Both the position numbers and the translations under genes were made by a program. Positions 13,263 through 15,885 of a DNA stretch of 64,000 nucleotides are shown here, one piece after another. Source of the DNA: Dimorphilus gyrociliatus (Eukaryota > Animalia > Annelida); the NCBI GenBank assembly GCA_904063045.1, contig CAJFCJ010000035.1, positions 62,001 through 126,000 on the forward strand, read 5' to 3'. Under the pieces are notes generated by a model that ran no database searches, was not told the DNA's origin, and saw nothing but the letters and a program-made list of their open reading frames with translations. The stretch's first letter is position 1; each line of letters begins with the position of its first letter.

Positions 13263-15885
13263 ATGTTTCAAAAAGAAATTTTTACATTCCTACTGCTTTT
13301 TATATTGGAGGAGATCGTATCAGAATCTCAGCTGGCCATAAAACTTCTGCCAAAGAATATAGAAAACTATAATTGTGTGGAAATAACTTGCAACGTTGGC
13401 TATGAACCGTCTCTTTGTAACAAAACGCATATGGGTGACTTGTGTAGAAAATGTCCCCCTGATACTTATAATGATACGAAAGGTAAAAGAATTGTCATTA
13501 ATTCGGATACTGGCTCCTATTGGCTAACACGAGGGTGTCGGAAAAGGTTTAATATAATTTACATTGTGTAGATTTTGAAAAATATATTAGGATTTAATTT
13601 TAATTGAAAATACTAGGCAAAGGTGCATAGGCCCATTTCAAGTTGTTCTCAGAGAAGGAAACTCAACGGATGATACAATTTGTGGTTGCGCAGAGAGATA
13701 CAGTATAAATGAAAGAGATAGCTCACTCTCAAGTCGAGTGATGTTCACTTTAATAAGTGAGTAGAGTTAAAATCCTATTAATTCCCTCTACTCTTTAATA
13801 CAATCAACTATTATTCAACTCCATATCAAGTTTGTACTGTGTTATGTCTATTGGTGTTTGTGAATGACAAGTTCAAGAGAATGTGGATCAAGGAAATTGG
13901 AATGTCATACATCGAATCAGCAATTGCTATTAAAAACTTAAATAATAGTTTCTCTAACAGCTGCCATAATTACGGAAGTAGAGTGTCAAAAGGGAATAAT
14001 TGCAACCTTGCTTGTCTAAAAACAAAGGCGCCGAAAAGAATTAATCAGCCAATAAAAGTTGATTGGTCAAAACTGCATGATGGATCATTTCAACATTCAC
14101 CTGGATTACATTTATGTTCATTTAGGCCAAGTCGAGGCATTTTACAAATCTCTATTAGTAGTAGAGCTGAGAAAAATTTGCGAATAATTAATCTTAAGTG
14201 TAAAACTTGGAGGAAGAAGATCGGCATTGCAATAAGGCTTCAATCAAAAAGGAATGATTGCTATACCAAGTATAGCTTTAAACCCAATCCAGTATTGACT
14301 ATAGAAAAGAAACTTGTAGATTTTCCAGTTTTTATGTTCATAACAAGGAAAAAGATTTTTGAAAGAGATGGTTGTATTAATGGTCTTTTAACTTTTACTC
14401 TTTGTACAGAGAATATCAAAAAACCTTCATCTAATGTTATAGCTATTCGACAATTTCATTTACATCGGAGAGCGGAAAATGTACAATTTTCAATCTGCTT
14501 TCAAATGCCTAACGGCAAAGAAAAAAGAAATAATATTAAAGTTCACAGAGCTCGATTAGATATCTCTATGGCTTTGAGTTTTGACTATGAATTTTGTTAT
14601 AATACATGCAGTACGGATAATTATGACTGTTGTCTTGGTTCTTCAAAATTGTCTATAGAACTACTAGAATCGTCCGTTGACCCTTTAAAAATTGTTCTTG
14701 ATTTGCGCAAAGATCTAATGGAAAACCCTGTCTTTATTTGTTGGTATGATAGAAGATTGACAGTATTGAAATGTCCATATGGTCAGTTAAGCCTTCCTGA
14801 AGAAGCAACGGAGAGTCCTGTTGAGATTTCGTTACAAGAGAAATTTTACAAAGTTAAAAACATCCTCCACGATATTAAGAAAAAATGTGGGAAAGACGAA
14901 CAAGCGTTCGTTAAATCAATAGTTTGTAAACCGGATGGGCAAACATTTACAAAGAATTGTAAACTAAACATTCCATTTTTGTCTTCAAGTCGAGAAAATG
15001 TTTTTGTATTTCATAAACAAAAACAGGATTATGAGAAAGTTGACATTCTAAAATGGGACACTAATTATATTGAAATTTTACTGAATAGTTTCTCCGAGTA
15101 TATTATTGTTAATATAGAAGGAAATAACAAAATAAAATTTTACGTCTATGGCGATGAAATTAACAAGGATACAACAACAATTTTAAGAATATTTCCACAA
15201 GTGCAAGTAGGCAGTTAAAAATTGAATTCAAAAAAAATACGAATAATATTTACCCTGTTTTTTTTTCTTCCAGAATAATCAATTCGATACTTGCTTTACA
15301 CCTCAATCATTCTTTAAAAATTTTACCATTGAGAAAAATGTAGTGAAAGATGGTAACATTGCGTGTTATCACTCCAAAGACACTTTTATTAACTCTGTAA
15401 ATTCAACATCATTTAAAATATGGGCGGAAAATGATATTTGTCACACTTCAGTCTATTCCCGACCTTTTCAATGGATAATTAATGAAAAACGTGATTTAAC
15501 AATAAAATTTACCGGAAGTATGTCCGATAATGATCCAATTACGTTGAGTACGAATAATGAAGCTGAAATTGACTTACCTAATACTCATAATTTCGTTATA
15601 ATCACTAATGACGTAATTAGAAATATGGCGAGTGTTTGCACTGCTGAAATGATACTCAAACTATATATTTACGTTGTTGACGAAGCAGTTTTCTTAATTG
15701 GCAAAAATTTTGAATATTCCACATATTTGAGTTATTTGATAAAAATTCGAAGTTACCTCTGGGAGAAACTAGAAAATGTAGAAAATCCAATACAGAGAGA
15801 AAAAGAACTTGTTCTAAAACTAAAGAATTGTATGATAAGTAAGGGCCTGTTAGACTTGAAAATGAAACTAGATGAAATATGCTAG
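13263..15885 (+). CDS. Type I membrane receptor: signal peptide, TNFR-type Cys-rich repeats, TM, unknown domain, ZU5, UPA-like, death-domain-like C-terminus (about 800 aa)
   Basis: Exons 13263-13546, 13617-13756, 13831-15206 and 15274-15885 have GT-AG junctions and preserve frame. TNFR motifs DLCRKCPPDTYN and GNSTDDTICGC are present. Splicing rebuilds the TM VMFTLIICTVLCLLVFV. ZU5-like motifs: GQLSLPEEATESPVEISL, VKSIVCKPDGQTFTKNCKLNIP, LNSFSEY. Confidence 0.75.

Follow-up and report, generated by a model that had tools for sequence, protein, structure and literature searches.

A four-exon gene of the annelid Dimorphilus gyrociliatus probably codes for a receptor of about 803 aa with type I membrane topology, in which a signal sequence, a TNFR-like ectodomain and a TM helix are followed by a domain of about 225 aa, a ZU5 domain, a beta-rich segment, and a helical C-terminus. 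The gene lies in the window, by which we mean the whole stretch of 64,000 nucleotides that we analyzed (positions 62,001 to 126,000 of contig CAJFCJ010000035.1, assembly GCA_904063045.1), and positions are numbered from the first letter of that stretch. The encoded protein is a lineage-specific variant of known parts, assembled by an unusual domain shuffle.

The structure of the gene follows from spliced contigs of the public RNA run X1, which place four exons on the forward strand at 13263-13546, 13617-13756, 13831-15206, and 15274-15885, separated by introns of 70, 74, and 67 nt that are all GT..AG. Contig 1 (2730 nt) aligns to 13100-13544, 13615-13756, and 13831-14792, and contig 3 to 14774-15206 and 15274-15942; the first exon joint was moved by +2 from the contig alignment, to 13546/13617. 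The exons sum to 2412 nt and, in phases 0>2>1>0>0, give 803 codons and a TAG in a single frame. Thus, the sequence-only reading, which had proposed four exons splicing in frame to about 800 aa, holds when it is checked against RNA-seq: all three joints are found in contigs, none of which spans exon 1 to exon 4. A stop lies in frame upstream of the start codon, and translation from an alternative ATG at 13194 would make the protein 23 residues longer; at the other end, the transcript contig stops 33 nt past the AATAAA. Exon 3 is one unbroken open frame of 459 codons, which in a genome of 29–31% GC is more than chance would give, as is its identity to a paralogue, DgyrCDS14866 (43% over 403 residues, from residue 205 of that protein, E 3e-95). 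The four-exon structure is confirmed, and this is an intact, transcribed, and spliced D. gyrociliatus gene. GBP-like GTPase genes lie within the same window.

Table 1. Features of the gene and of its predicted product, in window coordinates
Feature	Position	Strand	Remarks
Exon 1	13263..13546	+	Start codon, hydrophobic signal-like N-terminus, first Cys-rich part
Exon 2	13617..13756	+	Second Cys-rich part, short stalk, first TM half from 13738
Second TM half and basic stop-transfer NDKFKR	13831..13862	+	Start of exon 3; joint 13756>13831 GT..AG
Juxtamembrane region	13863..14726	+	~60 variable residues, then conserved ~225-residue block from 14022
ZU5-like beta-sandwich	14727..15095	+	Pfam, PDB profile, Foldseek, VIA, Atlas neighbours
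End of exon 3, proposed UPA-like start	15096..15206	+	E-Y-I-I-V-N and K-F-Y-V-Y-G-D...I-L-R-I-F-P
UPA candidate, beta-rich, poorly conserved	15274..15588	+	Position after ZU5; Atlas neighbours with UPA/UPA-FIIND
C-terminal helical domain, death-fold candidate	15589..15885	+	~98 aa, 5-6 helices; stop TAG 15883-15885
3′ UTR	15886..15942	+	AATAAA at 15904-15909; RNA contig 3 stops at 15942

In the public annotation of this assembly, the same gene appears on the same contig as DgyrCDS14392 (437 aa, 100% match), whose splice Q-V-Q|N-N-Q agrees with the exon 3/4 joint seen in RNA. This model begins at an internal Met, at 14505, and contains neither the ectodomain nor the TM helix nor half of the tail. 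It is an N-terminally truncated model of the window gene, and the truncation has hidden the predicted receptor nature of the protein.

Exon by exon, the gene is collinear over its whole length with DgyrCDS14866, which is 842 aa long and annotated as one protein. Exon 1 is 50% identical to its residues 28-85 and exon 2, also at 50%, to its residues 89-120; exon 4 is 29% identical (32% at the C-terminus), and the ZU5 core reaches 54%, with many invariant columns. Since every exon has its counterpart in this paralogue, the TNFR exons and the exons of 13831-15885 belong to one gene, as had been supposed. The rest of the family consists of two extra copies at L001, an unannotated one without ectodomain and an ectodomain fragment. 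The exons were searched individually, and DgyrCDS14866 represented the full-length protein. Among 1.8 billion representatives searched exhaustively with phmmer, DgyrCDS14866 was the sole family relative (8e-71); 5.8 billion proteins, screened by words and by profile, yielded DgyrCDS14392 and DgyrCDS14866 alone, and neither set contained a relative outside D. gyrociliatus. The phmmer match to P0003 (1548 aa, E 2e-4) was spurious, falling on a 64-residue tandem repeat. Nor did we find any description of a TNFR+ZU5 protein in the literature. The architecture, which had been put forward as an unrecognized one, is indeed found in no other organism searched, and judged by its sequences the family is small, fast-evolving, and seen in this species only.

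The RNA assembly is interrupted once, within exon 3 at 14763-14803, where contig depth passes from 69 to 162, although contig depth in X1 is not a measure of expression. One could take this step, together with the internal Met at which the public annotation starts and the ectodomain-less copy at L001, as the trace of two products: a TNFR-like/TM transcript, and a shorter, commoner one starting within exon 3 that would encode a cytosolic ZU5 protein, with the full-length chimera minor or absent. We consider this quite improbable, because contig 1 runs 290 nt beyond the annotated Met with the frame open, the reading frame passes through the break without interruption, and the paralogue, whose layout is the same, is annotated as one protein. 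As for the depth, poly(A)-primed libraries often show higher coverage nearer the 3′ end. An origin of the break in k-mers common with the L001 paralogues was also considered and rejected, there being 0 shared 21-mers.

The full-length product has the features of a type I membrane protein. A hydropathy peak at the N-terminus agrees with the putative signal peptide of the sequence-only reading, and a single TM helix stands after the Cys-rich part, followed by NDKFKR. The helix is 17 residues long (V-M-F-T-L-I, the split codon I, then C-T-V-L-C-L-L-V-F-V); as first noted from the genomic sequence, it is present only once exons 2 and 3 are spliced. Between signal and helix, exon 1 contributes 6 Cys, including C-x2-C-P-x-D-T-Y, and exon 2 a C-x18-C-x-C pattern terminating in D-D-T-I-C-G-C.

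That this ectodomain is TNFR-like is weakly but consistently supported, by sequence scores that are all sub-threshold. Pfam TNFR_c6 matches one exon, exon 2, at E 0.054 (14.3 bits, where the cut-off is 29.4). The profile of the family's entire ectodomain has seven matches in PDB, of which five are TNFRSF members (4-1BB, the best at E 0.052, ELR1, EDAR, HVEM, and DR6) and none are EGF or laminin chains; the alignment to 4-1BB covers 65 residues, including the ...D-T-x-C-x-C end of a CRD. These matches make it unlikely, in our view, that the ectodomain is a generic Cys-rich one of laminin-EGF-like type rather than a TNFR homologue, and the protein a UNC5-like ZU5 receptor that has nothing to do with TNF-type ligands, even though residues 34-62 of DgyrCDS14866 match EGF_LMN_ATRN (E 0.0012) and EGF_laminin (E 0.006) better than anything in the family matches TNFR_c6. 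Thus, of the two TNFR-like Cys-rich modules originally described, the likeness stands, in that the best matches are TNFR Cys-rich domains, whereas the assignment stays below threshold and meets a competing laminin-EGF match in the paralogue.

The ectodomain of the window copy contains 9 Cys, an odd count; the tenth, kept in the two other family ectodomains, is absent. An odd Cys count might be expected of a duplicate in decay, which is still transcribed but has ceased to work as a receptor, and the shortness of the TM helix, the fragmentary copies elsewhere, and the fast evolution that is evident in exon 4 would fit such a history. The intact 803-codon frame over four exons, the canonical splice sites, the splicing and polyadenylation of the transcript, and the strong conservation of the ZU5 core make decay very improbable.

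In the tail of the predicted receptor, about 290 residues without a family match separate the TM helix from the ZU5 region. They correspond to the cytoplasmic stretch of about 250 aa that had been reported as unrecognized, and Pfam gives no match to the juxtamembrane block. A tandem of two ZU5 domains, the arrangement of ankyrin and PIDD, was rejected, hhalign of the juxtamembrane against the ZU5 region giving a probability of 0.7%.

The ZU5 domain itself is supported by four independent weak lines, from sequence and from predicted structure, that agree on the same residues; each is sub-threshold alone. First, Pfam ZU5 matches exon-3 residues 319-389 at E 0.05 (14.1 bits, short of the cut-off of 21). 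Second, ZO-1 ZU5 is one of just two matches of the family profile, at E 0.79; with DgyrCDS14392 and with the whole-family profile, the PDB sequences gave no match even at E 10. Third, the AlphaFold2 model, with pLDDT 50-69 over this region, resembles ZU5 folds: ankyrin ZU5 chains make up 12 of the 13 top Foldseek matches (prob 1.0, E 3e-3), and VIA-align gives AnkB at Z 7.9, CARD8 at 7.7, NLRP1 at 6.6, and UNC5b at 5.1, where a Z of 7–8 is no higher than that obtained for unrelated beta-sandwiches. A shape search of the ESM Atlas with the same model returned mostly generic sandwiches. Fourth, all ten language-model feature neighbours in the ESM Atlas belong to ZU5/UPA/FIIND/Death families, with FIIND clusters predominating. 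The ZU5 call of the sequence-only reading is thereby upheld. Its motifs are L-S-L-P-E-E-A-T-E-S-P-V-E-I-S-L, V-C-K-P-D-G-Q-T-F...L-N-I-P-F, and a terminal S-F-S.

PIDD carries HFS, and NLRP1 and CARD8 SF|S, at the junction between ZU5 and UPA; the S-F-S of the window gene, at nt 15087-15095 within N-S-F-S-E-Y (15084-15101), falls at the ZU5/UPA junction too. In the AlphaFold2 model it sits in a loop between predicted strands at residues 188-193 and 198-203 of DgyrCDS14392, and in CARD8 and NLRP1 it is in a loop directly before a long strand (PMC3210808). The proposal that SFS occupies the site of the PIDD HFS thus agrees with that description. At the aligned position, DgyrCDS14866 has D-F-N and the L001 copy S-F-C, so that the nucleophilic Ser of FIIND and PIDD is replaced by Asn in the one and by Cys in the other. 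Self-cleavage is therefore not a trait of the family.

The residues that follow the motif, 15096-15206, form the most conserved stretch of the family, with invariant alignment columns. A UPA domain after the ZU5 is only suggested, by position and by the Atlas language-model neighbours; Pfam UPA, UPA_2, and UPA-FIIND have no match in the window gene or the family, and AlphaFold2 pLDDT is below 30 in the candidate segment. Helices appear at the C-terminus in both AlphaFold2 runs (DgyrCDS14392 with a four-row family alignment, pLDDT 39.8; the C-terminal 106 aa with two rows, 44.1), and helicity, size, and position make the C-terminal domain a death-fold candidate. No death domain was detected there by Pfam, PDB profile search, or Foldseek. 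With the C-terminal model, VIA scores the death domains of RAIDD, FADD, and p75NTR at Z 3.4–3.6, within noise, and the Atlas features reach 0.82 to a UNC5C Death+UPA fragment, under the reliable range. So small a family gives no useful alignment, and in these structure models UPA and the death domain remain candidates. Thus, from the earlier proposal of a beta-rich segment and a helical C-terminus completing a ZU5-UPA-death-domain tail, what survives is a helical domain of death-fold size; a death domain did not emerge from Pfam, PDB profiles, AlphaFold2, Foldseek, or VIA-align, nor a Pfam match for UPA.

If the parts are read together, a mechanism can be proposed. A ligand, either secreted or on a membrane, would gather receptors into clusters by way of their Cys-rich ectodomains. 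The ZU5-(UPA)-helical tail may behave like the closed supramodule of UNC5 and PIDD and then open or, in this copy, might instead cleave itself at SF|S. Exposure of the C-terminal helical domain would in turn permit the assembly of downstream death or immune signaling. We can only infer that TNF-like ligand sensing may in this way be coupled to PIDDosome-type signaling, and a role in defence would be compatible with the immune-type neighborhood of GBP-like GTPases. A bolder version, which we regard as a long shot, is that of a transmembrane FIIND-like receptor: self-cleavage at SF|S would allow ligand binding at the TNFR-like ectodomain, or a pathogen's attack on the receptor, to free a cytosolic fragment with UPA and death fold, which would nucleate a caspase-activating complex. 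If true, the receptor would follow, in membrane-bound form, the "functional degradation" logic of the PIDDosome and NLRP1, a logic not known to us for any receptor.

A ZU5 domain behind a TNFR-like head would mean that a lophotrochozoan lineage has put parts from cell death and immunity into new combinations. To our knowledge, ZU5-UPA-death-fold modules behind a membrane occur only in the UNC5 netrin receptors, and the window gene may provide a natural test of whether another type of ectodomain can drive a ZU5 module. The value of the case is limited by a family restricted to one species and by two domain calls of four that are unproven.

Known systems resemble the predicted receptor in different parts. 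Ankyrins, with ZU5-ZU5-UPA-DD (4D8O, 3UD1), are the top structural match to its ZU5 (17–18% identity over the VIA matches, Z 7.8–7.9, in addition to the Foldseek result). Ankyrins, however, have two ZU5 domains along with ANK repeats and act as adaptors in the cytosol, whereas the domain that precedes ZU5 in the window gene is not ZU5-like. In the death-domain TNF receptors TNFR1, Fas, DR6, EDAR, and p75NTR, as in the predicted receptor, a signal peptide is followed by Cys-rich repeats with the signatures C-x2-C and D-T-x-C-x-C; there is one TM helix, and a helical domain lies at the C-terminus or close to it. For signaling, TNF receptors use bare death domains or TRAF motifs; by comparison, the ectodomain of the window gene consists of only about two modules, carries a 27-residue insert, and has sub-threshold scores, and the tail of about 650 aa, in which no death domain is detected, contains a ZU5 that is absent from every described TNFR. 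PIDD1 and the FIIND of NLRP1 and CARD8 offer a ZU5 ending in x-F-S, in a loop before the first UPA strand. The best fold matches include FIIND chains of CARD8 and NLRP1 (Z 7.7, 6.6, and 5.6), and the NLRP1/CARD8 motif is identical to the S-F-S of the window gene (PMC3210808). These are proteins of the cytosol, equipped with LRR, NACHT, or CARD parts, in contrast to a predicted membrane receptor.

UNC5 (UNC5A-D; 3G5B) is comparable in overall plan, although its ectodomain is Ig-Ig-TSP1-TSP1 rather than a small Cys-rich TNFR-like module and sequence homology is not detectable beyond the ZU5 core. In the window gene, though not in UNC5, a further conserved domain (about 225 aa) precedes ZU5, and its UPA and death domain are only candidates. 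The fold of UNC5b matches the ZU5 of the window gene at 16% identity (Z 5.1), and UNC5 clusters are among the Atlas neighbours. We know of no other widely known class of receptors that carries a ZU5 tail after its TM helix, and the likeness is one of plan: a type I receptor whose tail holds ZU5, then a beta-rich segment, then a C-terminal helical domain.

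The receptor gene predicted from the sequence alone is spliced in frame to about 800 aa, as had been proposed. Only one public sequencing run, X1 (dated 2017, kind not on record), contains this stretch, and it is evidently RNA, since its contigs leave out three short GT..AG intervals. Contig 1 (2730 nt) maps to 13100-13544, 13615-13756 and 13831-14792, and contig 3 (1105 nt) to 14774-15206 and 15274-15942. The splice donors read GTTTAA, GTGAGT and GTAGGC, all acceptors end in AG, and the phases run 0>2>1>0>0, giving 2412 nt, or 803 codons plus TAG. Upstream stops close the frame; the first ATG past them lies at 13194, that of the sequence-only reading at 13263, and both starts yield a hydrophobic N-terminus. 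The poly(A) signal AATAAA at 15904-15909 and the contig end at 15942 also define the 3′ end. The message is spliced and polyadenylated, with an intact frame and topology signals present.

Within exon 3, the X1 assembly is interrupted at 14763-14803, where a 41-nt unitig has a depth of 352, versus 69 upstream and 162 downstream; therefore, no single contig joins exon 1 to exon 4. The reading frame is unbroken across this interval. The unitig, which coincides exactly with the most conserved ZU5 motif, has no 21-mer in common with the paralogues on L001, the stretch of contig CAJFCJ010000092.1 that holds further family members. Its extra depth could reflect another copy, an allele or an internal start.

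Public annotation holds only part of this gene. Among 5.8 billion proteins, the translated open frame 13833-15215 has a single match, at 100%, to DgyrCDS14392 (P0001, 437 aa), placed on contig CAJFCJ010000035.1 of assembly GCA_904063045.1 from the annelid Dimorphilus gyrociliatus. This model has an exon 3/exon 4 joint reading Q-V-Q/N-N-Q and starts at an internal Met at nt 14505, beyond which contig 1 extends 290 nt; it therefore lacks all of the upstream parts described from the sequence. Annotation is empty from 11328, the end of a GTPase gene, to that Met.

A paralogue bears on whether the TNFR-like and ZU5-like exons form one gene or two. An exhaustive phmmer search with P0001 of 1.84 billion cluster representatives returned one real relative, DgyrCDS14866 (P0002, 842 aa, E 8e-71); a second match, to a repeat protein, was spurious. 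Exon 1 aligns to P0002 residues 28-85 (50% identity, E 7e-21), exon 2 to 89-120 (50%), exon 3 to 205-603 (43%, E 3e-95) and exon 4 to 609-809 (29%). All four exons are collinear with P0002, so this layout occurs at a second locus of the genome that is annotated as one protein. Two more family pieces lie beside DgyrCDS14866. One is the closest relative of the receptor gene (65.8% nt identity); it starts at a TM-like segment, has no ectodomain, is ∼80 aa short in the juxtamembrane domain and is broken by a run of N near 15140. The other, on the opposite strand, is a fragment with the ectodomain only. A family profile found no further members among 5.8 billion proteins. Protein word, phmmer and profile searches gave no relative outside D. 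gyrociliatus, and by sequence the family is confined to this species.

Coordinates of the receptor gene, its relatives and the neighbouring GTPases
Feature	Sequence	Position	Strand	Remark
Exon 1	window	13263-13546	+	X1 joint, shifted +2 (ambiguity)
Exon 2	window	13617-13756	+	X1 joints, first shifted +2
Exon 3	window	13831-15206	+	X1 joints
Exon 4	window	15274-15885	+	X1 joint
GBP-like GTPases	window	7165-11328		PF02263 on annotated gene
Third family copy	L001	13583-15163	+	unannotated
Ectodomain-only fragment	L001	16111-15636	-	two exons

The ectodomain contains nine Cys after the signal-like segment, six from exon 1 and three from exon 2. Three copies have in common the pattern C-x4/5-C-x2-G-x-E-P-x2-C-x8-C-R-x-C-x5-N-D...W...C-R-x-R-x2-C-x-G-x-F...T-x-C-x-C. 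A three-ectodomain profile run against all PDB sequences gave seven matches within an E limit of 10; five were to the TNF-receptor superfamily (4-1BB, E 0.052 over a 65-residue alignment; ELR1, EDAR, HVEM and DR6) and none to EGF or laminin chains. However, Pfam TNFR_c6 on exon 2 scores far under its gathering threshold (E 0.054), and the P0002 ectodomain weakly matches laminin-type EGF instead (E 0.001). The ectodomain is thus probably, short of proof, a divergent pair of TNFR-type modules. The window copy lacks a tenth Cys that sits 14 residues past the C-x-C in the two other ectodomains, which leaves one Cys unpaired or paired between chains; an inter-chain disulfide is possible. The lost Cys (13263-13756 versus P0002 residues 109-124) closes a third, A1-like module (C-x14-C) in those two.

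The TM helix arises only upon splicing, as had been noted. Exon 2 encodes ...S-S-R-V-M-F-T-L-I and closes on one further base; exon 3 adds two bases, making an Ile codon, and continues C-T-V-L-C-L-L-V-F-V-N-D-K-F-K-R; the 17-residue helix is therefore split over the joint. Some 60 variable residues follow, and then, from nt 14022, a conserved block of ∼225 residues that has no Pfam match, agreeing with its description as unrecognised, and that hhalign finds dissimilar to the ZU5 region (probability 0.7%).

Four independent lines of evidence, each weak, place a ZU5 domain on the same residues, about 299-421 of exon 3. First, Pfam ZU5 matches at E 0.05. Second, the ZU5 of ZO-1 is one of only two PDB matches to a three-copy profile, covering the signature ...I-P-x-x-A...C-x-P-x-G-x-x-F...L-x-L-P. 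Third, ankyrin ZU5 chains head the Foldseek list (E 3e-3, prob 1.0) obtained with the AlphaFold2 model of P0001, which is poor overall (pLDDT 39.8; 50-69 in this region), and rat NLRP1 FIIND is also among the matches. VIA-align over 48,161 chains gives AnkB Z 7.9 (17% identity), ankyrin-R 7.8, CARD8 FIIND 7.7, ZU5-ANK 7.1, NLRP1 6.6 and 5.6, and UNC5b 5.1, intermixed with unrelated sandwiches at similar Z. Finally, the 10 nearest named clusters by ESM-Atlas language-model features are all ZU5, UPA, FIIND or Death families (score 0.91). We accept the ZU5 call with good confidence. The motif N-S-F-S-E-Y (nt 15084-15101) occupies a loop between two predicted strands, directly before the long strand E-Y-I-I-V-N, which agrees with the position at which the CARD8/NLRP1 SF/S site and the PIDD HFS are described (PMC3210808). 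The aligned residues are D-F-N in P0002 and S-F-C in the third copy. Thus, self-cleavage, possible though rather unlikely in the window copy, is not conserved across the family.

The most conserved family stretch, K-F-Y-V-Y-G-D...I-L-R-I-x-P-Q, follows the SFS. The next segment is beta-rich and poorly conserved; its position and Atlas neighbours are what speak for a UPA, whereas Pfam gives no match and AlphaFold2 pLDDT is <30. The last ∼98 residues (32% identity to the P0002 tail) are helical in both AlphaFold2 models, with five to six helices, but the death-domain call made for them found no Death match in Pfam, no death-domain chain in a PDB profile search and nothing in Foldseek. In VIA-align, the death domains of RAIDD, FADD and p75NTR score Z 3.4-3.6, within noise, and Atlas features reach 0.82, under the reliable range, to an UNC5C Death+UPA fragment and a CARD+UPA-FIIND cluster. 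A death fold, unproven, is compatible with these data, and we give it an even chance.

The surrounding DNA is AT-rich and eukaryotic (GC 23-35% in 2-kb bins). Contig 1 reaches ∼1.18 kb upstream of 13100, so 7TM-like pieces there may be transcribed or co-assembled with the receptor 5′ end; the contig may have fused with a GPCR-like gene that lacks annotation. These ORF pieces (12120-13084, plus strand) carry an E-R-Y motif (7TM_GPCR_Srv E 0.011, 7tm_4 E 0.055). The neighbouring GBP-like GTPases fit a defence role without proving it. Downstream, a 51-codon ORF (15935-16090), starting ∼30 nt past the poly(A) signal, reads like an NLR/RNI-type leucine-rich repeat (...C-C-V-L-V-K-L-N-L-S-Y-N...), has no Pfam match and is truncated by a repeat element; possibly it represents an orphan LRR cassette. 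In that element, the 14-mer GGTGAAACNGTACC forms inverted arrays of three to four copies at 16093-16159 (plus) and 17056-17122 (minus), with eight copies in the window versus 0.01 expected and one further copy at 59108. The arrays flank ∼1 kb carrying a 151-aa ORF (16301-16756, minus strand; no Pfam match); the element resembles a small DNA transposon that has landed just 3′ of the receptor gene.

On mechanism, the ZU5 core and family conservation are supported. The protein would act as a type I receptor clustered by ligand, with a tail that may behave as the auto-inhibited UNC5 or PIDD supramodule does or, if it is cleaved, as a FIIND does, and that could expose its C-terminal helical domain to downstream partners. 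Full-text literature searches found no described TNFR+ZU5 protein. The gene is a new combination of known parts, of which public data already hold a truncated model and an uncharacterised full-length paralogue; on present evidence it cannot be filed under either the TNFR superfamily or the ZU5-UPA-DD class. Its closest working likeness is UNC5, likewise a ZU5-tailed membrane receptor, from which it differs in its TNFR-like head.
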